From Macrostomum lignano (taxonomy: Eukaryota): DNA of 36,843 nt. Under the pieces are notes generated by a model. The model was not told the origin of the DNA and made no database searches. It saw only the letters and a list, made by a program, of their open reading frames with translations. Location: assembly GCA_002269645.1 (NCBI GenBank), contig NIVC01004730.1:1-36843 (forward strand), written 5' to 3'. Numbering within the stretch: position 1 is the first letter of the stretch; every line of letters begins with the position of its first letter. Of this stretch, positions 4,940-36,843 are shown piece after piece. The translations under genes and the position numbers were made by a program.

Positions 4940-5640
4940 GCCGCGGAGCGCCCTGCTCATCAACGCAAGCGGAACTCTACGTGGTCAAGCTGGCCTAAAT
5001 TGGCTCGAAGGCGCACCAGCAAAGGAGAAAGCACCGTGATCATTAGCGACAGTCAGAGCACTCTACAGGCTATTAAGGGCTTGAGCAGAAACACCTTGGC
5101 CATTAGAGTCAGGAAAATGCTGAGGAAGCTGGAGGAGGAAGAGAAGGTGGTTAAGCTAATCTGGGTGCCCGCGCATTGCGGCTTGACAGGAAACGAGTTG
5201 GCGGATGAAGCAGCGAAAGAGGCATCAACCTGGGCCCAGGAAGGCATCAAAGTGCCACCCAGCAGCAACAGGAAGTACAGCCAGAGCAAGCTGGGCAGAG
5301 ATAACGGCAGAAGCCACAGGAGAAGCAGGGAAACCTATGGAGAGCAGGGGGCGGAGCCCAGCCGAAGGGCCTGAGCAAGCAGGAAGCGTTTGACTTCAGA
5401 CGATTCAGGAGTGGCCACTCTATGGACCTAGCAGAGTACAGGAAGCGCATAGGTAGACAAGAGGAGGGCTGGTGTACGAGCTGCGGCTTGGAGACCGAGA
5501 CGCTTGAGCATGTCATGGCGTGCCCCGTCACGCGCAGCCTTAGGGAGGAACTGGACCTGCATGAGATTCGAGTCTTGAGTAGGAGACCAGGAATCTGCAG
5601 CGTCAGAAACAGCACCTCAAAGATTGGGCACCACGCTTAA
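4940..5640 (+). mobile_element. 3' fragment of a non-LTR retrotransposon (I/Ingi-type): RNase H domain plus C-terminal CCHC finger, frameshifted
   Basis: Translations give SSTQAELYVVKLA, VIISDSQSTLQAI and LIWVPAHCGLTGNELADEAAKEA (LINE RNase H motifs). Further on are RFRSGHS and WCTSCGLETETLEHVMAC (CxxC-x8-H-xxx-C). Confidence 0.85.
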
Positions 5641-17193: not shown

Positions 17194-18326
17194 TTACTGG
17201 TTGTGATAGAACGCCCATCGACATGATCCCCGACGACGATTCTTTGTCTCGACTCTCGAGCAGTGAAGGTGATACTGTCGCCGGGCGGATGCTCGCTGAA
17301 GGTTTGGCTGACGATGCTCGCTGAAGTACCAGCTTGCGACGGTGGCTTGAACGACCGTCCGATTGTTCAGCATGGCGTTGGCCGCGTAGTGGCGCATCAA
17401 CATTGGCACAGAGGTTTCAAATAGCGCCGCTGACTGATCAACCAACTCCGGCCGCCCGCCAGCCACAATGTCCTGCTTGGAGCTCCGAAAAATATTCGGG
17501 CAGACGCCGGAACGACCGAGTATAGCTTTGGCATGATCGACAACCGCCTGGCTGAAGGTGGAAACGGACATCCGCTCACCTCGGTTGGTGCACAGCACAA
17601 ACGGCGAGTTGGCGACGCCGACCATGTCGTTGCAATGACGGCCGTTTCGCCAGGTGAGCAGCAGCTTAATGAATGCGGTCGGCACTGTGAGAACGCTGCA
17701 GCCGACAGACTTTATTTTCTTATGGCTGACCTGGCGACCAGGCAGCCGGATGGTCGAATAGCCGTTGTCATGATTGTCGCGCCGACTGGCGCTACCCGGC
17801 CGGATGTGCGCTATGCGGAGACCGCGCCATGGCCGGACGCGCAGCGGATGCATCGCAGTGGCATGCAGAGCAAATCGATTGCGCATCTTAACAAAGCTGT
17901 CCTCGTCGGCTGGACCAGAGGCGACCAGTGCGGCGTAGTCGTCCAGGATGGTGCGCCACTCTACCGGGGTTAACAGCTTCTCTTTCTTTCTGTCGTGGTG
18001 CAGCGGCGCATCCAGCCTATACTCAAGGTCGTGCGCTGGCGAATAGTTTTGAGCCGCTACTGAAACAGCTTGCACCTGTTTTCCAGCTCGGCTGCAATGT
18101 CGGCCGGCAGTTGCATGCGCTCCACGAGCGATTGAAGATGCGCGCGGTCGTGCTCAACGTAGGCTAGCATGTACTGCATGCATTTTATTAGCGCTTGCGC
18201 CCTGTTTCTAACTGTGCCGGAGCTATTGCTGGTGGCTCGAACCTCCGTTGCGGCGGTCGTTGGGTTGGCTAAGCAATAGACTAAATCTCGCGGCTCGACG
18301 ACTGGACAGCTCTTGTCGGCGGCGCC

Positions 18327-18359
<33 letters not shown>

Positions 18360-18872
18360 CATCTTTGAGCAGACCGACAAGATCAGCAAAAAGGTGTCAA
18401 TGAGAGCGTCAAGATGGCCGTCATAGGCTGGGTTGCGCACGCCTGTTGCATCGTTCCAATACAATGACTGGATTACACGCAGCTGCTTTATCAGCGGAGC
18501 ATCGGCCGAATACTGCGCCAATAGCGAGGAATGCCGCAGTGTAATCACAGCCAAGGCATCACCCGCCGCGATCGCCTCCTTGGCTGACATGGTCGTCGTC
18601 TTTGTCGTCGTCTCCGCTGCACCGCCGACGCTGACTGCCGCAGTCGAAGACGCGCTTGTCGCCGCCGTCACCGCCGCTACACCGCTGGCACCCGCCGCGA
18701 TCGCCTTCTCGGCTGACATGGTCGCCGACGCCGCCGCCGCTGCACCGCCGCTGCTTACTGCCGCTGCCATAGTCGAAGACGCGCTTGCCGCCGCAGACGC
18801 CGCCTCCGTTGCTGCACCGCTGGCACTGTCATCGTCGTTGACGATGTTGACGGGTTGATCACCAGATGGCAT
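17194..18872 (-). CDS. Tyrosine recombinase (about 559 aa), split by one single-base frameshift near 18075-18085
   Basis: ORFs 18057-18902 and 17194-18075 fuse if one A is added to GGAAAACAG (giving ELEKQVQAVS). Motifs are TVRNRAQALIK (core-binding-like), HPLR (Arg codon 17839-17841), HKKIKSVG, CPNIFR (Arg 17485-17487) and FETSVPMLMRHY (Tyr 17385-17387). The first ATG is at 18872. Confidence 0.75.
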
Positions 18873-19687
18873 AATGACGGTGGTGGCAGAATATTCTGTC
18901 AACTTAGCGCCGGCGGCGACCAGTTTTGCGTGCTTAGCTGAAGATGAACTTAACTGACTTAACTGAACGATGAAGTTGACTACAGAGCTGGAACGGCGGG
19001 CTGTCTTTTAATGGATGGATCATTATTATGCCTTGCACACTGTTTTCTGTTCCTGTTGCTGCTGCTGCTGATGCGATATACATTAAAGAAAAAGTGCTGC
19101 TAGGCTATAGCTACTGATTATTTGTCTATGGTAGAAAGACTCAGTTTGAGACTAGCTAAAGCAATACATATATATCTTTTAAGGGAAAAATGCTAGGCAC
19201 AGCTGCCGCGTTGTGCTATTAATAACATTTTTATACTAGGTAGTCTATGGCATGGCGTGTGAGTAGTGACTGACTGCCGCATTAACGCACTCTACCGCTT
19301 TAACACACTCGATATCGCTTTCACGCAGGAGCCGAATTAACGTAGCCGCGTTAACGCAATTTTTACCGCTTACACTCAGAAGCATATTTGTCAACGTTTG
19401 TTTAAAGCTTCCTTACTAGGTAAACTAATTGTAAGGTATAGCAATCTGACCCTAACCTGGCTAATAATATTACCGTTAGTAAATAACAACTGTGTTTTAC
19501 GTTTGTTATGACAACAATAAACGTTTACTGTTTTTTCTTACTTGTCGTCGTATATTTAAAGCGTCGTAACCACGTAAACTAATTGTAAAGTAACAATTTG
19601 ACTGTAACGTAAGTAACAATATTAACAATAACAAGTAACAAGCGTGCTTAGCAGTCCGAAAACCTATAATAATCTTTATATTGGCCC

Positions 19688-21280: not shown

Positions 21281-21730
21281 AGGAACGCATTTGTTTCCCG
21301 ATTGATATTCGCATTGATATTCGAATTTTAACAAAAGCAAAATACTAAAAGCAACCCGCAGCATGAAACTTTACACAGCGTAAACTGCAACCGTGAAACG
21401 ACTATTGGTCAAGTTTCAGCTCGATATGTAACTTTGGCTCTGAGCTGGAGCGATTTTCGATGTGTTCCATTTAAAATACATGTGATTCCAAAATTCATAT
21501 TGATATTCGAGTACAGGTACTTCTGCTTCACTGATCTTGACGAAACTTTACACAGAGTAAACTGCAATCGTGAAACGACTATTGGTCAAGTTTCAGCTCG
21601 ATATGTAACTTTGGCTCTGAGCAGGAGCGATTTTCGATGTGTTCCATTTAAAATACATGTGATTCCAAAATTCATATTGATATTCGAGTACAGGTACTTC
21701 TGCTTCACTGATCTTGACGAAACTCTACAC
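21281..21730 (+). repeat. Non-autonomous element: ~85-bp head plus 177-bp tandem units (about 2 copies); Helentron/HINE-like architecture
   Basis: Unit starts (GAAACT(T/C)TACAC) are at 21365, 21542 and 21719. The same head and units occur inverted at 23261-23925. Confidence 0.8.
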
Positions 21731-22582
21731 ACTGGATGGAAGCCTTTCAATCCCGACTGGAAGCTAAAATTGTTTGACGCAACTGTCAGTTTGGTTTTTA
21801 TTGCAATGAATTCTTTAGAGTTTAGAGTTTAGATAGACCAACATGCAGTTGGTAAATCTACAGATGAAATCTTGAGGGAGACAAAAGTTATTTCACTTTA
21901 AAATTACGTATTTTACTTTGTTTACCCTGTTAATTACAAGGACAGAAGCGAAAACAGAAACGTAAAAAGCCAAAATCATGCAGTATGTGGGTGACTTGCA
22001 TGCTTTAAAGACGAATTATAAAACAGTAATTTACAATATTAAGTAACAGTTGGCAACATGTTTTAAGTACTGTAGATAAGTTATTGTAGTATATAGAAAA
22101 GTATTAGGTCCTGTACCACGTTGAAGCGAACAAACCAAACGTACTTTAATTGATTGTGTAAAAACAATACTACACGAAGAGGATCCTAAACAACGTTCGT
22201 GAATTAGGCCAGGCATTAGGTATGAGGATTTAACCTGGTACAGAAGTTTAAGGTTTTCCTAAAGCAAAAAAGAGTACATTGTGTAGCTGCTCCTCTCCCT
22301 CCACTTGATTCTTGATATTATGCATAACAGTCTTTGTTTTACACACATCCCAATTGCTAGACATTATAAAAGGCAAATTTTCAAGTGACAGGAACCGCTC
22401 ACGAAACGCTTCTGTCGCTCCAGTCTCTTTGATATCAGAGTAAAATTTATTTCGCTCTGCTCTCGTTTTACGTCTGAAACAGCCGACTTGTGCATCTGCA
22501 TGACAAGGACAACTGAAGTTACGTTATCCTTGTCCTTGCTGCATGATTCAGCTCTCAAAAAATTTCAACTCCCGGTCTCCCG

Positions 22583-23261
22583 GGATCTCCCGGTCACGTG
22601 ACTTTGGGTGGCAACAACTCAGCCAATCAGAAAATTTGACGTGCGTTATAACAAATCGGCTCAGCCAATCAGAATCGAGGTGTTCCATTATAACAAATTG
22701 CGGTCCAGTTGGCCGCTATTTAAACCGGAGTTTTTGGCCCGCTCGGACCCAACTGGGTGCCCTCTCTGGAACCTCCTGCTCCGCCACCGCCTCCTGGGAC
22801 TTTGGCCTAACTTAGACCTCCCGGAGCTCGACCGTCGTCTCTTGATCCCCGTATCGCGACTCCCCCCATCATCATCAAGGACGAATCCCCCCGGTCGTCA
22901 GCAGCGAACATCAAGATTAAGAACATTGCACCTGCTAGCTATCTGCGAAGGGTGTGACAGCATCATCCCGAGTCGAGAGCTGCGAAGCACTAAACCGATT
23001 CGGTCACTGTGGATTACCTGGTCTCCGGCTGTTGAGTTTCTGATTGGTTGGGTGAGAGGCTACCTAGACTTGCTTGATTGGGTGATTCGATCCCTTATCT
23101 GTCCCCTATTTCATAGCTGGATTAGGCGCACACTTTTGCTCATTTTGTTCAATGTTCAGCAGTGCTGTTATCGAGGCAGAAATCACTTTTAGTAGTCTGA
23201 ATTAGTAGTCTGAAACTCCAATACAATCTGAAGTGTAATTGAAGTGTAGTTAAGGAGAAGG
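22583..23261 (+). repeat. Dispersed repeat copy 2 (same family as 13302-13973), ending at the 177-bp repeat element
   Basis: Aligns with copy 1 from GGATCTCCCGGTCACGTGA to TAAGGAGAAGG. Confidence 0.75.
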
Positions 23262-23925
23262 AAACTTGAACAATAGTCGTTTCACGGTTGCAGTTTACTC
23301 TGTGTAAAGTTTCGTCAAGATCGGTGAAGCAGAAGTACCTGTACTCGAATATGAATTTTGGAATCACATGTATTTTAAATGGAACACATCGAAAATCGCT
23401 CCTGCGCAGAGCCAAAGTTACATATCGAGCTGAAACTTGACCAATAGTCGTTTCACGATTGCAGTTTACTCTGTGTAAAGTTTCGTCAAGATCAGTGAAG
23501 CAGAAGTACCTGTACTCGAATATCAATATGAATTTTGGAATCACACATGTATTTTAAATGGAACACATCGAAAATCGCTCCTGCGCAGAGCCAAAGTTAC
23601 ATATCGAGCTGAAACTTGACCAATAGTCGTTTCACGGTTGCAGTTTACTCTGTGTAAAGTTTCGTCAAGATCAGTGAAGCAGAAGTACCTGTACTCGAAT
23701 ATCAATATGAATTTTGGAATCACACATGTATTTTAAATGGAACACATCGAAAATTGCTCCTGCGCAGAGCCAAAGTTACATATCGAGCTGAAACTTGACC
23801 AATAGTCGTTTCACGGTTGCAGTTTACGCTGTGTAAAGTTTCATGCTACGGGTTGCTTTTAGTATTTTGCTTTTGTTAAAATTCGAATATCAATGCGAAT
23901 ATCAATGGGAAAACAAATGCGTCCT
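23261..23925 (-). repeat. Second copy of the head plus ~177-bp tandem-unit element (about 3.3 units), inverted relative to the first
   Basis: Reverse complement of the 21281-21730 head and units. Unit length varies by a few nt. Confidence 0.8.
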
Positions 23926-29446: not shown

Positions 29447-30714
29447 AGATTAGCATATCAAGATTGAATTTGGCTTTTCTATTATCAAGATCTCTATCTC
29501 CATTTTACAAAATCTAAATATACTAAATCTCTAAGGTTTGTTTGTTAGTCAGACAGTCAGTCAATCTGTTGTTAATTTTTTAGAACCCTCTGGCCAATTT
29601 TTTTCAAATTTGCATTAAAAATTGTAATTTTTCAACAATCATGCATAACTTTTTTGTTGAAAAATTTTAATGGAAAGTAGGTCAAATATTCAAAAAACTA
29701 TTTTTAATGCTTCCAATGGATGCTCTATTGCTAAATTTAATTGTTCAATTCAACCATTTAGTCCTCTCCTTGACCAATGTACAATGTAGGTTGTACATTC
29801 ACAATGATCCTTTGCACAATTTGTGTGGTTGGTTGAATTTTATTATTGTTTACCAACCAATCTAATAGATAAATGATAAAAGAGTGGGTGCATAGGGGGG
29901 TTAAAAAGCTGGCCTGAAATTTATCAACCCCCTAAACTGCACTGGGGGCTGGAGGCAGTAGCTAATGTGCCCAATTAATTCAGATTCATTTGGCCAATTG
30001 GTATATAAAATTTATACCAATTCTTAGTGAGTCAACTATTTGAAAAACAAAAACAAATGCAGGCTTGGGTTGAGGAATGAAGTGGGGTGCAAGGGTTTTG
30101 TTGGATAGATTAAAGCTCCCAATCAGTTTTCTTGCATCTTTTATTGCAGAATATTCCAAGAGAAATTGATCACTGGTGCATAGAGTGGCGACTTTTCAAT
30201 GTTGCTGTATATATATAAAATTTCAAACAGTGAAAAAATAAATTTGGAAGTTGGTCAAATGATGTTTTTCTTGCTTTTAATGTTTGGATTTTGAATTTGA
30301 ATGGCCCATTGGGGCTTAATGCACTAGTTTAGACTACTTATTTTATAAAATTTGTCTTAATGCTTATTTGCTTTGCTTTTGGGTAAGATTTTAGGATTAC
30401 TAAGACGCAAATTAGTAATCCTAATCCTGATAACCACATAATATCAGGACATACCAAGGCATATCAGTACACACCAAGGCACACCAGGACACACTAAAAC
30501 AAAGGCTAAAAAGTTTTATTTTCAGCAAAATGTACATCAAATAGTATTACAGAATTAGCAATAATATATAATAATATCCAAATAGATTGCTCAAATTTAT
30601 ATTTCAAACTCCCACATGTTAATACTGTTTGTTACATTGTAAACAGTATTATCTGGGTTTCATCCATGATTATAAATTATCATTATGCAACATTTCAATG
30701 CGGTCAAAGCAGAC

Positions 30715-31106
30715 ATGTCAATTCTGGTAATGTCCCTTTGCCTAGCCGGCAGTCTGGCGCTCCTGTTCCTGGCTGTCTACCTGTTGATGACCCTCTCCGA
30801 TCTGGACTGCGACTATTTGAATGTTCGGGAAGGCTGCGACCGGCTCAACAAATGGGTATGGCCGGAGGCTGCTGTGGCCGCTGCTGTGCCCATCCTGCTG
30901 CTGCTGACCCTGCACTGGGTCCTGTTCCTGCTGTCAGCGCCTCTGCCCTGCTACCTCATTTATCGCTGCTTAACCCTGCCGAAAGGTCAGATCGGCTTGT
31001 TCGATCCGTTCGAAATCAATAATCGCAACTATATTAAACGGGCGATGTACTTTTGCACCTTTAAGCTCGTGCATTACCTGCTTGTGTTCTTTGTCCTGCT
31101 GTACAG
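30715..31106 (+). CDS. CNIH4: Cornichon homolog (CNIH4-like), exon 1
   Basis: Reads MSILVMSLCLAGSLALLFLAVYLLMTLSDLDCDYLNVREGCDRLNKWVWPE...GLFDPFEINNR...KLVHYLLVFFVLLY, with the cornichon LSDLECDYLN and DPxEI motifs. A GT donor follows at 31107. Confidence 0.9.
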
Positions 31107-31131
31107 GTGCGTTTGGGTTCACTTTATCTGT

Positions 31132-31535
31132 CTGAATCTGCCACACCGCTCCCTGCTCTCCCAGTGCCTGAATCTGCCTCACCGCTCCCTGCTCCCCCAG
31201 TGCCTGAATCTGCCACACCGCTCCCTGCTCTCCCAGTGCCTGAATCTGCCTCACCGCGCCCTGCTCCCCCAGTGCCTGAATCTGCCACACCGCTCCCTGC
31301 TCCCCAGTGCCTGAATCTGCCTCACCGCTCCCTGCTCCCCCAGTGCCTGAATCTGCCACACCGCGCCCTGCTCCCCCAGTGCCTGAATCTGCCACACCGC
31401 TCCCTGCTCCCCAGTGCCTGAATCTGCCTCACCGCTCCCTGCTCCCCCAGTGCCTGAATCTGCCTCACCGCTCCCTGCTCCCCAGTGCCTGAATCTGCCT
31501 CACCGCTCCCTGCTCCCCCAGTGCCTGAATCTGCC
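31132..31535 (+). repeat. Intronic 35-36-bp minisatellite, about 11 copies
   Basis: Unit CAGTGCCTGAATCTGCC(A/T)CACCGC(T/G)CCCTGCT(C)CCC. Confidence 0.95.
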
Positions 31536-33252: not shown

Positions 33253-33294
33253 ATGGCAGATAATGTTAAAGTCGCCGTTCGTGTTCGCCCATTC
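33253..33294 (+). CDS. KIF28: Kinesin-3 (KIF28/KLP-6-like), coding exon 1
   Basis: Reads MADNVKVAVRVRPF, the kinesin motor start motif. It is missing from the ORF track because it is short. Confidence 0.85.
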
Positions 33295-34050
33295 ATATCC
33301 TTTTGACATTGCTCAGTAGTGCTGCTGTACGTTATGCATTGTCAATATATCAATTATACTAGGTGGCATTTTTCGTTTTTAAATCATTTTTGTCAAAGAT
33401 TTTAGTTTTCAACAAAAGGATTAAGACGTTACTAATGAGACACATAAAATATTACGTAAGCGTGTACATCTGTAGATACACAGACGTTGACGTCACTTTT
33501 TGTATGCTATAAATATACATATGCAAGGATCTAATATTTATTTATAGCATAGAATACAATATAGATAGAAGATTTAACTTAACATTATGTATTTATTAAA
33601 AGAACTGTCTTTTATAGTAAAAATTATCACAAATGTTTACGTTTTGACTTGTTTGATAATAATTAGCGAAGTGAATTGGGTGTCATTTGTTAGTTTTTAA
33701 AAAAAAACATGAAGGATGTCATGAAAATTTGTTTAATATAAAGAGCTAAAGCATAAGTTCTGAACTACAAGCTGTGGGTATTATGGTTTTAAATCCAATA
33801 AATCAATTTACATTTTACAAACGATTCACCATACACCTAACCATTCAAAGATATTTTGCTAATTACTATTTTTTAAACTTTGATTTTAGCCATATTTATA
33901 ACAGATTATAACTTTATATCGTCTTTAGAAGTTATGTTTGATTAATTTCATAAATTTTACCACGGTGCTACTTAACCTAATTAATAATCGAAAAATTATC
34001 ATTATTTTTATTTTTCTTAACCGCGCACTTTTGAATCGCAACCCTGACAC
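33295..34050 (+). other. U12-type (minor spliceosome) AT-AC intron, phase 0
   Basis: The 5' site is |ATATCCTTTT, a branch-point-like TTTTCTTAAC lies at 34012-34021, and the 3' end is ...GACAC|. Removal gives VRVRPF-NERERTR. Confidence 0.88.
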
Positions 34051-34239
34051 AATGAGCGCGAGAGGACTCGCGGCAGCAAGCTCATCATCAAGATGGACGG
34101 CACCCAGACTGTCATCACCGACCCGGCCAGCGGCCAGGATAAAAAATTTGCCTTCGATTATTCCTATTGGTCACACGACGGCTTCACGGAGCAGGCAAAC
34201 GGCTACTTTGCCCCGGCCAACCCCAAGTACGCTGATCAG
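34051..34239 (+). CDS. KIF28: Kinesin-3 (KIF28/KLP-6-like), coding exon 2
   Basis: Reads NERERTRGSKLIIKMDG...KKFAFDYSYWSHDGF...KYADQ, followed by a GTGAGA donor at 34240. The FDYSYWSHDGF segment is characteristic of KIF28/KLP-6. Confidence 0.9.
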
Positions 34240-34291
34240 GTGAGAGATTTGGCCGGTTGCTCCTGGCGTGCCATGCAACTTCAGATTCCTA

Positions 34292-34595
34292 CAGTGAGCT
34301 GCCATCCCCATCTCACCAATCCTTCAGTGAGCTGCCCTCCCCATCTCACCAATCCTTCAGTGATCTGCCATCCCCATCTCACCAATCCTTCAGTGATCTG
34401 CCATCCCCATCTCACCAATCCTTCAGTGAGCTGCCATCCCCATCTCACCAATCCTTCAGTGATCTGCCATCCCCATCTCACCAATCCTTCAGTGATCTGC
34501 CATCCCTATCTCACCAATCCTTCAGTGATCTGCCATCCCTATCTCACCAATCCTTCAGTGATCTGCCATCCCCATCTCACCAATCCTTCAGTGAT
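34292..34595 (+). repeat. Intronic 33-bp minisatellite, about 9 copies
   Basis: Unit CAGTGA(G/T)CTGCCATCCCCATCTCACCAATCCTT. Confidence 0.95.
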
Positions 34596-34662
34596 TAAGC
34601 ATATTTAGGAGTAAACTTCAATCATTCCAACGCTAAAATCCACTATCAATTCTCAATCGCAG

Positions 34663-34980
34663 CAAAAAGTATTCAACGACCTTGGCCGAGGCGTCCTTGA
34701 CAACGCCTGGGAGGGCTACAACTGCAGCCTGTTCGCCTACGGACAGACCGGTAGCGGCAAGAGCTACTCAATGATTGGCTACCAGGCCAACAAGGGCATT
34801 GTGCCCATCGCGTGCGAGGACCTGTTCAAAGCCATCGAGGCCAAGAAGCCGGAGATGAAAGCTGGCGAGGAATACCAGGTATCGCTGAGCATGATCGAGA
34901 TCTATAATGAGCAGGTGCGCGACCTTCTCGTGTCCAAAACTGTCAAAGGCGGCTTGAAAATTCGCCAGCACCCCAACAAG
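34663..34980 (+). CDS. KIF28: Kinesin-3 (KIF28/KLP-6-like), coding exon 3 with the P-loop
   Basis: Reads QKVFNDLG...GYNCSLFAYGQTGSGKSYSMIG...SMIEIYNEQVRDLL...KIRQHPNK. It is flanked by CGCAG| and |GTAAGT. Confidence 0.93.
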
Positions 34981-35653
34981 GTAAGTTGGAGATCTAGAGC
35001 AGGTTCAGGAGGTGGATGGTCGCTCGTCCGATAGCCCTTAGGTAGATATCTGGAGAGATCTGAGTTGGGGCCGAGGTAGGTGAGCCTGTCCTGAGTAAAG
35101 ACAGATTCGGTGTTCCACATTCTCAACACCGGAGAGGCAGAATGCGCATTCCTCGCTAGGGATTTTTCCCTGGAGGCGGCGATGCCTGGAAATACAGCGC
35201 CATGGCCCCCCGAGAGAGACAAGAAGGCATGATATTGGGGATTTTATGCTAAAAACTGACTAATTCCTATGCATACGAGCTAGATAGCTTACGAGTATCA
35301 AAACCGTCCTGAGAAACTCAAGGTCTCGTTGGTTGCAGAAACTTCAGCAGTCCTCGACTGCTATTGCCGTGCTGAACTCAACTGCTTTTCAATTATTTAT
35401 TGATGACTGAAGGCTTCAGTTTGTGCTTGGCTACTCTTCAGGTTTGAGAAGCTTTTCTATAGCCAAATCTTTTTTGAATTTCTGGTTCTTTAACTTACTC
35501 GTTAGAATTTGTTTGGAGGAAATTTCCTGCAGAAAAGTGGTTCTCTTTTGATGAGCTGTCAATGTTGTCAAAAACTGATCAATTCAGGATAAGTTGGTGG
35601 TGGTGGCGCGGGGCCCTCATTAACAGTCATATTAATCCAACTGATCACGGCAG

Positions 35654-35882
35654 GGCTTCTACGTCGAACAGCTGACCACCTCGCCCGTGAGCAGCTACGC
35701 TCAGATCGAGCCAAGATCGCCGAGGGCTCGCACAACCGCACCGTGGCGGCCACCAACATGAACGCCACCAGCAGCCGGGCGCACACCATCGTGGCCATCA
35801 GCTTCACGCAGAAGACCTTAGACGGCAGCGGGCAGAGCATGACACGGTCGTCTGTGATGAACCTGGTAGATCTGGCTGGCAG
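35654..35882 (+). CDS. KIF28: Kinesin-3 (KIF28/KLP-6-like), coding exon 4 (switch I to DLAG), with an apparent 1-nt deletion at ~35710
   Basis: Reads GFYVEQLTTSPVSSYAQIE, then (frameshift) KIAEGSHNRTVAATNMNATSSRAHTIV...VMNLVDLAG(S). It is flanked by GGCAG| and |GTGAAG. The gene continues beyond the window. Confidence 0.88.
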
Positions 35883-36067
35883 GTGAAGACAATTTTACAG
35901 TACAGATTGCGCAATTAGATGACCAGACTGCGCCTTTTCGGTCCAGGGTAGCAACCACACAGAGACAGATGGTCGAGAGCTGTTGACCCATCATTTATCC
36001 TCAAAAGTATGAGAAAAATCAATCATGTTCGTAGGTTAGAAGATTAGATAAGCAGCTCTCGAAAAAC

Positions 36068-36829
36068 CTTAGTGCTGGCGCCCCTTGGTGCTGGCGCCCC
36101 TTGGTGCTGGCGCCCCTTGGTGCTGGCGCCCCTTGGTGCTGGCGCCCCTTGTGCTGGCGCCCCTTGGTGCTGGCGCCCCTTGGTGCTGGCGCCCCTTGGT
36201 GCTGGCGCCCCTTGGTGCTGGCGCCCCTTGGTGCTGGCGCCCCTTGGTGCTGGCGCCCCTTGGTGCTGGCGCCCTTGGTGCTGGCGCCCCTTGGTGCTGG
36301 CGCCCCTTGGTGCTGGCGCCCCTTGGTGCTGGCGCCCCTTGGTGCTGGCGCCCTTGGTGCTGGCGCCCCTTGGTGCTGGCGCCCCTTGGTGCTGGCGCCC
36401 TTGGTGCTGGCGCCCCTTGGTGCTGGCGCCCCTTGGTGCTGGCGCCCCTTGGTGCTGGCGCCCCTTGGTGCTGGCGCCCCTTGGTGCTGGCGCCCCTTGG
36501 TGCTGGCGCCCCTTGGTGCTGGCGCCCCTTGGTGCTGGCGCCCTTGGTGCTGGCGCCCCTTGGTGCTGGCGCCCCTTGGTGCTGGCGCCCCTTGGTGCTG
36601 CGCCCCTTGGTGCTGGCGCCCTTGGTGCTGGCGCGCCCCTTGGTGCTGGCGCCCCTTGGTGCTGGCGCCCCTTGGTGCTGGCGCCCCTTGGTGCTGGCGC
36701 CCCTTGGTGCTGGCGCCCCTTGGTGCTGGCGCCCTTGGTGCTGGCGCCCCTTGGTGCTGGCGCCCTTGGTGCTGGCGCCCCTTGGTGCTGGCGCCCCTTG
36801 GTGCTGGCGCCCCTTGGTGCTGGCGCCCC
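36068..36829 (+). repeat. Intronic 16-bp minisatellite, roughly 47-48 copies
   Basis: Unit GGTGCTGGCGCCCCTT, with occasional single-base losses in the C run. Confidence 0.97.
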
Positions 36830-36843
36830 AGTAATGGCGCCCG

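Follow-up and report, generated by a model that had tools for sequence, protein, structure and literature searches.

The window analysed here is the whole 36,843-nucleotide stretch of the Macrostomum lignano contig, and its 3' part carries the beginning of a kinesin gene on the plus strand. Elsewhere in the window, a cornichon-domain ORF (30685-31125; PF03311), apparently intronless and 97% identical to M. lignano BOX15_Mlig014191g2, extends into a tandem array of 36 nt x 11 at 31132-31535. At 5000-5374 there is a fragment of an RNase H domain (PF00075), presumably left by a retroelement, and satellite-like repeats of 177-179 nt occupy two blocks in opposite orientations (21365-21731 and 23261-23842). 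Two long overlapping ORFs, one of 293 aa and the other of 281 aa with a repetitive, Ala-rich sequence, lie on the minus strand at 17194-18902. Neither of them has a Pfam match, and for the ORF at 17194-18075 (minus strand), presumed to be of transposon origin, no homologue was found in a database of 5.8 billion proteins. The visible part of the kinesin gene is arranged as follows.

33253-33294, plus strand: coding exon 1, MADNVKVAVRVRPF, from the start codon up to and including the motor-domain beta-1 strand
33295-34050, plus strand: intron 1, predicted to be of U12-type AT-AC, 756 nt, phase 0, 27% G+C
33295-33303, plus strand: 5' splice site of U12 type, ATATCCTTT, in agreement with the RTATCCTTT consensus at 9/9 positions
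34012-34021, plus strand: candidate U12 branch-point sequence TTTTCTTAAC, with the branch A at 34019 or 34020
34027-34028, plus strand: competing AC, 8 nt past the branch A, the use of which would give RPF-F-stop (TTT TGA)
34049-34050, plus strand: AC 3' splice site, after which exon 2 begins with Asn, as in 5/5 orthologues
34051-34239, plus strand: exon 2, NERERTRGSKLIIKMDG...KYADQ, then a GTGAGA donor
34240-34662, plus strand: intron 2, U2-type GT-AG, holding a 33-nt x 9.4 tandem array
34663-34980, plus strand: exon 3, QKVFNDLGRG...GQTGSGKSYSM (P-loop)...IRQHPNK, then a GTAAGT donor
34981-35653, plus strand: intron 3, U2-type GT-AG
35654-35882, plus strand: exon 4, GFYVEQL...SSRAHTIV (switch I)...NLVDLAG (switch II), with a 1-nt frameshift at 35711-35712
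35883-36843, plus strand: intron 4, with a GTGAAG donor, running off the contig end via a 16-nt tandem array

The visible codons contain the kinesin motor signatures GQTGSGKS (P-loop), SSRAH (switch I) and DLAGS (switch II), and the Pfam domain PF00225 is present in all homologues of the gene. Exons 1-4 together give 260 codons without a stop codon and with every motor motif kept, at 70% identity to the bivalve orthologues. Among PDB structures, the best bit score was obtained with 7wrg (347), compared with 218 for KIF1A, 186 for KIF13B and 180 for KIF14. The record of 7wrg is titled just 'Kinesin-like protein', and we take it to be C. elegans KLP-6. The best named database matches carry the name KIF28P. 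The original prediction had placed the gene in the KIF28/KLP-6 subfamily, and both the 7wrg bit score and the KIF28P-named matches bear this out. By similarity, the assignment of the gene to kinesin-3 and its KIF28/KLP-6 subfamily holds, closer to KLP-6/KIF28 than to KIF1, KIF13 or KIF14. Because the contig ends within the tandem array of intron 4, the remainder of the gene lies outside the window. This array is built of the 16-nt unit CTTGGTGCTGGCGCCC in about 48 copies (36067-36829) up to the contig end, and it probably explains why the contig ends here. The 33-nt x 9.4 array of intron 2 spans 34287-34595, and its variants are substitutions, not indels.

The original prediction joined position 33294 to 34051, giving VAVRVRPF-NERE, and held that no GT-AG pair restores this start motif. 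All GT, GC and AT donors within 33256-33420 were combined with all AG and AC acceptors as far as 34140. The 33295/34050 pair was the only one to keep VAVRVRPF-NERE, at exactly the predicted coordinates, and in this full enumeration no GT-AG or GC-AG pair kept the kinesin motif, as all of them delete part of the conserved strand; both claims are thus confirmed. Translation from 34051 reads NERERTRGSKLIIKMDG...FAFDYSYWSHDG and opens as NERERTRGSKLIIKMDGTQTVITDPASGQDKKFAFDYSYWSHDG, the start of a kinesin-3 motor (NERERTRG). An in-frame TGA at 34045-47 stands directly 5' of exon 2 and therefore blocks any upstream acceptor, and read-through from an unspliced exon 1 yields only Ile-Ser-Phe, three codons, before a stop. 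The predicted exon junction is CCATTC/AATGAG, that is, ...CGCCCATTC/AATGAGCGC....

The first ten bases of intron 1 (33295-33304) are ATATCCTTTT, of which ATATCCTTT matches the U12 donor consensus RTATCCTTT (PMC1635337). ATATCCTTT occurs a single time in the 36.8-kb window when both strands are searched, and its chance expectation is about 0.4 matches in the 73.7 kb of two-strand sequence, or about 5e-6 per position. Since it is unique and so improbable at any given position, its position directly behind the RPF codon cannot be put down to chance. The last 20 nt of the intron, TTGAATCGCAACCCTGACAC, contain 11/20 pyrimidines with no run, so that there is no polypyrimidine tract. The U12-like donor, the AC end and the branch-like motif about 30 nt upstream are all found where the original prediction had located them.

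To place the intron in a wider context, we compared the genomic loci of ten homologues, in nine of which the RPF codon could be located; in the tenth, the Mytilus locus L004 (P0087), the 10-kb flank did not contain exon 1. Five of these nine loci have an intron at exactly this phase-0 codon boundary; they are listed here with the spacing between the branch A and the final base of the intron.

Pecten maximus (bivalve): donor ATATCCTTTT, branch GTCCTTGAC-N9-AC, 10 nt, intron of 1740 nt
Mactra antiquata (bivalve): donor ATATCCTTTT, branch ATCCTTAAC-N9-AC, 10 nt, intron of 2618 nt
Portunus trituberculatus (crab): donor ATATCCTTTT, branch CCCTTAAC-N10-AC, 11 nt, intron of 410 nt
Ciona intestinalis (tunicate): donor ATATCCTTTT, branch ACCTTAAC-N9-AC, 10 nt, intron of 650 nt
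Lamellibrachia satsuma (annelid): donor GTATCCTTGT, branch TTCCTTGAC-N9-AG, 10 nt, intron of 1581 nt

The comparison of intron position and type among KIF28/KLP-6 orthologues, which had been proposed together with the original prediction, thus returned four AT-AC introns and one U12 GT-AG intron at the same boundary, and these five support the U12-type AT-AC reading of intron 1. The exception in subtype is the Lamellibrachia intron (L005 12858-14438), which belongs to the U12 GT-AG subtype (GTATCCTT...TTCCTTGAC...AG). Switches between the AT-AC and GT-AG subtypes of U12 introns have been described (PMC3584512), and among the loci compared here there is one such switch from AT-AC to GT-AG, in the annelid lineage. 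In Pecten, Mactra, Portunus and Ciona the Met of exon 1 sits 4-7 residues before VKVAVRVRPF. The Ciona intron has two BPS-like motifs (L010 7870-7960): AATCTTAACC lies 35 nt from the acceptor and AACCTTAAC 10 nt.

No intron at the RPF/N boundary was found in Toxocara (nematode, L008) or Calicophoron (trematode), from which the intron is, as far as these loci indicate, lost. Minor splicing has been lost in most nematodes, which agrees with the absence of the intron in Toxocara. In distant kinesin-3 paralogues of Bugula and Lottia, U2-type GT introns lie 6-8 nt downstream of the U12 position (L002 ~11568, L006 ~10060 and L011 ~8060, after N-Q-R, N-S-R and N-Q). Conversion via a cryptic U2 donor close by may account for them, or they may be introns of independent origin.

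Flatworm, molluscs, annelid, arthropod and tunicate share the position and type of the intron as well as its ten donor bases, which probably dates the intron to the bilaterian ancestor. The same conservation across groups shows that selection acts on exon 1 and the U12 donor, and it is the strongest support for the U12 AT-AC reading. It also bears on the possibility that exon 1 is not used at all. In that case the mRNA would start at exon 2, either because a spliced leader is trans-spliced to an AG, for example the one at 34055-56, or because an internal promoter is used, and translation from the Met at 34093 would produce an N-terminally truncated motor. Trans-splicing affects about 39% of M. 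lignano genes (PMC5730564), the ATG at 34093 opens the same frame, and the public Mactra and Ciona models are built in just this way. However, such a product would be without the conserved beta-1 strand and the RPFN motif, and exon 1 and the U12 donor could not be conserved codon for codon in five phyla unless they were expressed and spliced. Exon 1 is, moreover, plainly present upstream in Mactra and Ciona, so that the public models of these two species represent annotation errors and not biology. We therefore regard a start at exon 2 as highly improbable.

Slightly more remote still is a U12 intron with another acceptor, namely an AT-AG intron ending at 34056, whose junction CCATTC/CGCGAG would give RPF-RERTRG with Asn-Glu deleted. 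This acceptor is in frame, and AT-AG U12 introns have been observed (PMC1635337). Yet its use would remove the Asn with which exon 2 begins in all orthologues, AT-AG is a disfavoured combination of termini (PMC3584512), and the branch site would be still more distant, at 36 nt. We consider this reading extremely unlikely and retain the AC at 34049-34050 as the acceptor.

A feature that sets the M. lignano intron apart from its orthologues is the position of the candidate branch site. A single C-to-T change separates TTTTCTTAAC from TTCCTTAAC and would produce a G-U wobble with U12 snRNA, and TTTTCTTAAC fits the 12-nt branch-site description TTTTCCTT-AA-YY (PMC1557818). In the 756 nt of the intron there is a single TYYTTRAY, at 34014, inside TTTTCTTAAC and in the last 40 nt; by chance, this pattern would be found in a given 35-nt stretch with a frequency of about 1.5%, and the 12-nt pattern TTTTYYTTAAYY with about 0.05%. 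The duplex of TTTTCTTAAC with the branch-site-binding segment of U12 was the best in the search, at -6.8 kcal/mol, and those of the orthologues range from -5.7 to -9.1. The branch A, however, is 30 nt away from the final base of the intron, versus 10-11 nt in 5/5 orthologues. The optimum for the U12 branch site is 11-13 nt from the 3' splice site (PMC3584512), while SpliceRack allowed 8-30 nt, and a BPS at the optimal place is not needed in every case (PMC1557818). The original prediction gave the distance of about 30 nt without remarking that it is an outlier.

No convincing branch site came to light closer to the acceptor. CTTTTGAAT, with its A at 34034/35 and 15-16 nt from the acceptor, would form only about 4 bp with U12 including two wobbles, and GCAACC, 9-10 nt from the acceptor, would pair with U12 even worse than CTTTTGAAT. 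A hairpin that would shorten the 30-nt gap was rejected as well, since 34021-34050 folds at just -1.2 kcal/mol (z-score 0.3). The tetranucleotide AACC occurs at 34019-22 and again at 34040-43, and removing the 21 nt between the two copies would leave a 9-nt spacing, which makes a small insertion a plausible origin. The branch site may thus have been displaced by a 21-nt AACC-flanked insertion.

There are several ACs downstream of the candidate branch site. A mis-spliced junction from the AC at 34028 would read CCATTC/TTTTGAATC, and the AC at 34047-48 is out of frame; of the ACs after the branch site, the one at 34049-50 alone is productive. The choice of a U12 acceptor depends on distance and is prone to error (PMC3584512), so that splicing of this copy may be less efficient than that of the orthologues, in other words slower or with more errors. 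It is rather unlikely, in our estimate, that the 30-nt spacing is functional and not damage. One version of this idea is that the minor spliceosome of Macrostomum may tolerate distances far beyond the vertebrate-derived 10-20 nt rule. In another version, the displaced branch site and the AC at 34027-28 may form a deliberately inefficient intron, prone to nonsense-mediated decay, that throttles the expression of a ciliary or sensory kinesin.

The original prediction did not mention a frameshift in exon 4, in which the parts GFYVEQLTTSPVSSYAQIE and KIAEGSHNRTVAATNMNATSSRAH... lie in different frames. At the frame join (35708-35715) we found GAG-CC-AAG, where GAG-GCC-AAG (Glu-Ala-Lys) is expected from KLP-6 and the bivalve orthologues; KLP-6 reads EIEAKIEEG at this point. 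This comparison suggests that one G was lost from GAG-GCC-AAG. The true sequence at 35708-35715 would be GAGGCCAAG in the case of an assembly error and GAGCCAAG in the case of a real frameshift. The neighbouring 16-nt array contains 35 canonical and 10 deviant units, and the deviants are all indels, nine of them single-base losses in C/G runs, with 0 substitutions, which suggests uncorrected long-read errors. Such variation, made of indels and homopolymer losses alone, is the signature of long-read consensus error, and the assemblies of M. lignano are PacBio-based (PMC5730564). The frameshift in exon 4 is therefore probably a long-read assembly error.

The frameshift and the displaced branch site together raise the question of whether this copy is a decaying duplicate, either a pseudogene or a redundant homeologue, with relic U12 signals, a real frameshift at 35711-12 and perhaps no productive splicing. 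The displaced branch site could then be read as relaxed constraint after the recent genome duplication of M. lignano, in whose assembly non-repetitive blocks with at least 95% identity amount to about 180 Mb (PMC5730564). The 30-nt spacing as opposed to 10-11 nt in orthologues, together with the nearer out-of-frame AC, would be in line with such decay, as would the top database matches, which are without any M. lignano kinesin model. On the other hand, the 260 visible codons are stop-free, the P-loop, SSRAH and DLAGS are all kept, the 70% identity to bivalve orthologues is retained, and the donor matches those of the orthologues at 10/10 positions. The sole defect, GG to G, is of the very class that dominates the indel-only variation of the neighbouring array, which points to an assembly error. 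Decay of this copy thus appears quite unlikely to us.

A working minor spliceosome in M. lignano was implied by the original prediction. Complete sets of minor snRNAs have been reported in Schistosoma (PMC2770079), for which minor introns have also been reported (PMC10639083), and U11, U12, U4atac and U6atac in the planarian Schmidtea (PMC6312358). With minor snRNAs known from Schistosoma and Schmidtea, a working flatworm minor spliceosome comes as no surprise, and in M. lignano it would be expected rather than notable. Minor snRNA genes gave no Rfam match at the gathering threshold in the window, a result that is uninformative for a 37-kb piece. Our literature searches found nothing on minor splicing in Macrostomum, which is also not among the species listed in a supplement of PMC10639083, and nothing linking KIF28 to U12 or minor introns. 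The deep conservation of the KIF28 intron thus appears to be undiscussed in the literature searched.

Since exon 1 comprises just 14 codons and is joined via an AT-AC intron, gene-prediction pipelines restricted to GT-AG truncate the motor domain. The original prediction had anticipated that predictors would miss exon 1, and two public models illustrate this by starting inside exon 2. The Mactra model P0002 starts at a Met inside exon 2, and its real exon 1 is unannotated 2.6 kb upstream (L003 7311-7340). Likewise, the Ciona model P0117, labelled KIF1C, starts at the exon-2 Met, with the real exon 1 unannotated 0.65 kb upstream (L010 7285-7308). In both, the unannotated exon 1 reads M..VKVAVRVRPF and the AT-AC intron is unannotated too. 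The public models of Pecten maximus (P0001) and Portunus (P0017) already splice the AT-AC intron correctly. The main value of the present observation is therefore practical, in the correction of KIF28-type gene models. The intron also illustrates cleanly how a minor intron can stay at a single codon boundary from the bilaterian ancestor onwards, and it is a candidate marker for minor-splicing competence in flatworms. It belongs to a known class, ancient but ordinary, and leaves the knowledge of the minor spliceosome unchanged.

Taken together, positions 33295-34050 very probably constitute an AT-AC intron of the minor, U12-dependent class that separates the Phe codon of RPF/N from its Asn codon. 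We infer its splicing in vivo and the identity of the branch adenosine from the sequence. In the proposed course of events, the U11/U12 di-snRNP would pair with the donor ATATCCTTT and the branch site TTTTCTTAAC, U4atac/U6atac.U5 would join next, and the exons would be ligated at CCATTC/AATGAG to give a product beginning with MADNVKVAVRVRPF-NERE.... The intron would have been inherited from the bilaterian ancestor and kept as U12-type in flatworm, bivalves, annelid, crab and tunicate.

Compared with known systems, the M. lignano intron resembles the U12 AT-AC class in its donor ATATCCTTT, its TTCCTTAAC-like branch site, its AT and AC ends and the lack of a polypyrimidine tract, as well as in the deep conservation of its position and type across phyla. 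It differs in the 30-nt spacing, which lies at the outer edge of the 8-30 nt classifier range. U2-type AT-AC introns (type II, spliced by the major spliceosome) share the terminal dinucleotides AT and AC with it. Their donor, however, is AT followed by the GT-AG-type consensus (PMC1557818), thus U2-like, and they are without a TCCTTRAC branch site. The intron in the window has the U12 consensus as its donor and so does not fall into this class. The closest individual counterparts are intron 1 of KIF28P in Pecten maximus (P0001, L001 10043-11782) and in Portunus trituberculatus (P0017, L007 6049-6458), with which it shares the boundary (RP[F/M]/N, phase 0), the ten donor bases and the AC. These introns differ from it in length (1740 nt and 410 nt versus 756 nt), and there is no alignment outside the splice signals. 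At the protein level, the gene in the window shares the N-terminal V(A)VRVRPFN-(D/E)RE with the KLP-6/KIF28 motors and has about 60% motor-domain identity over 259 residues to C. elegans KLP-6 / vertebrate KIF28 (7wrg). Unlike in the full KLP-6/KIF28 motors, only the first 260 residues are contained in the window.
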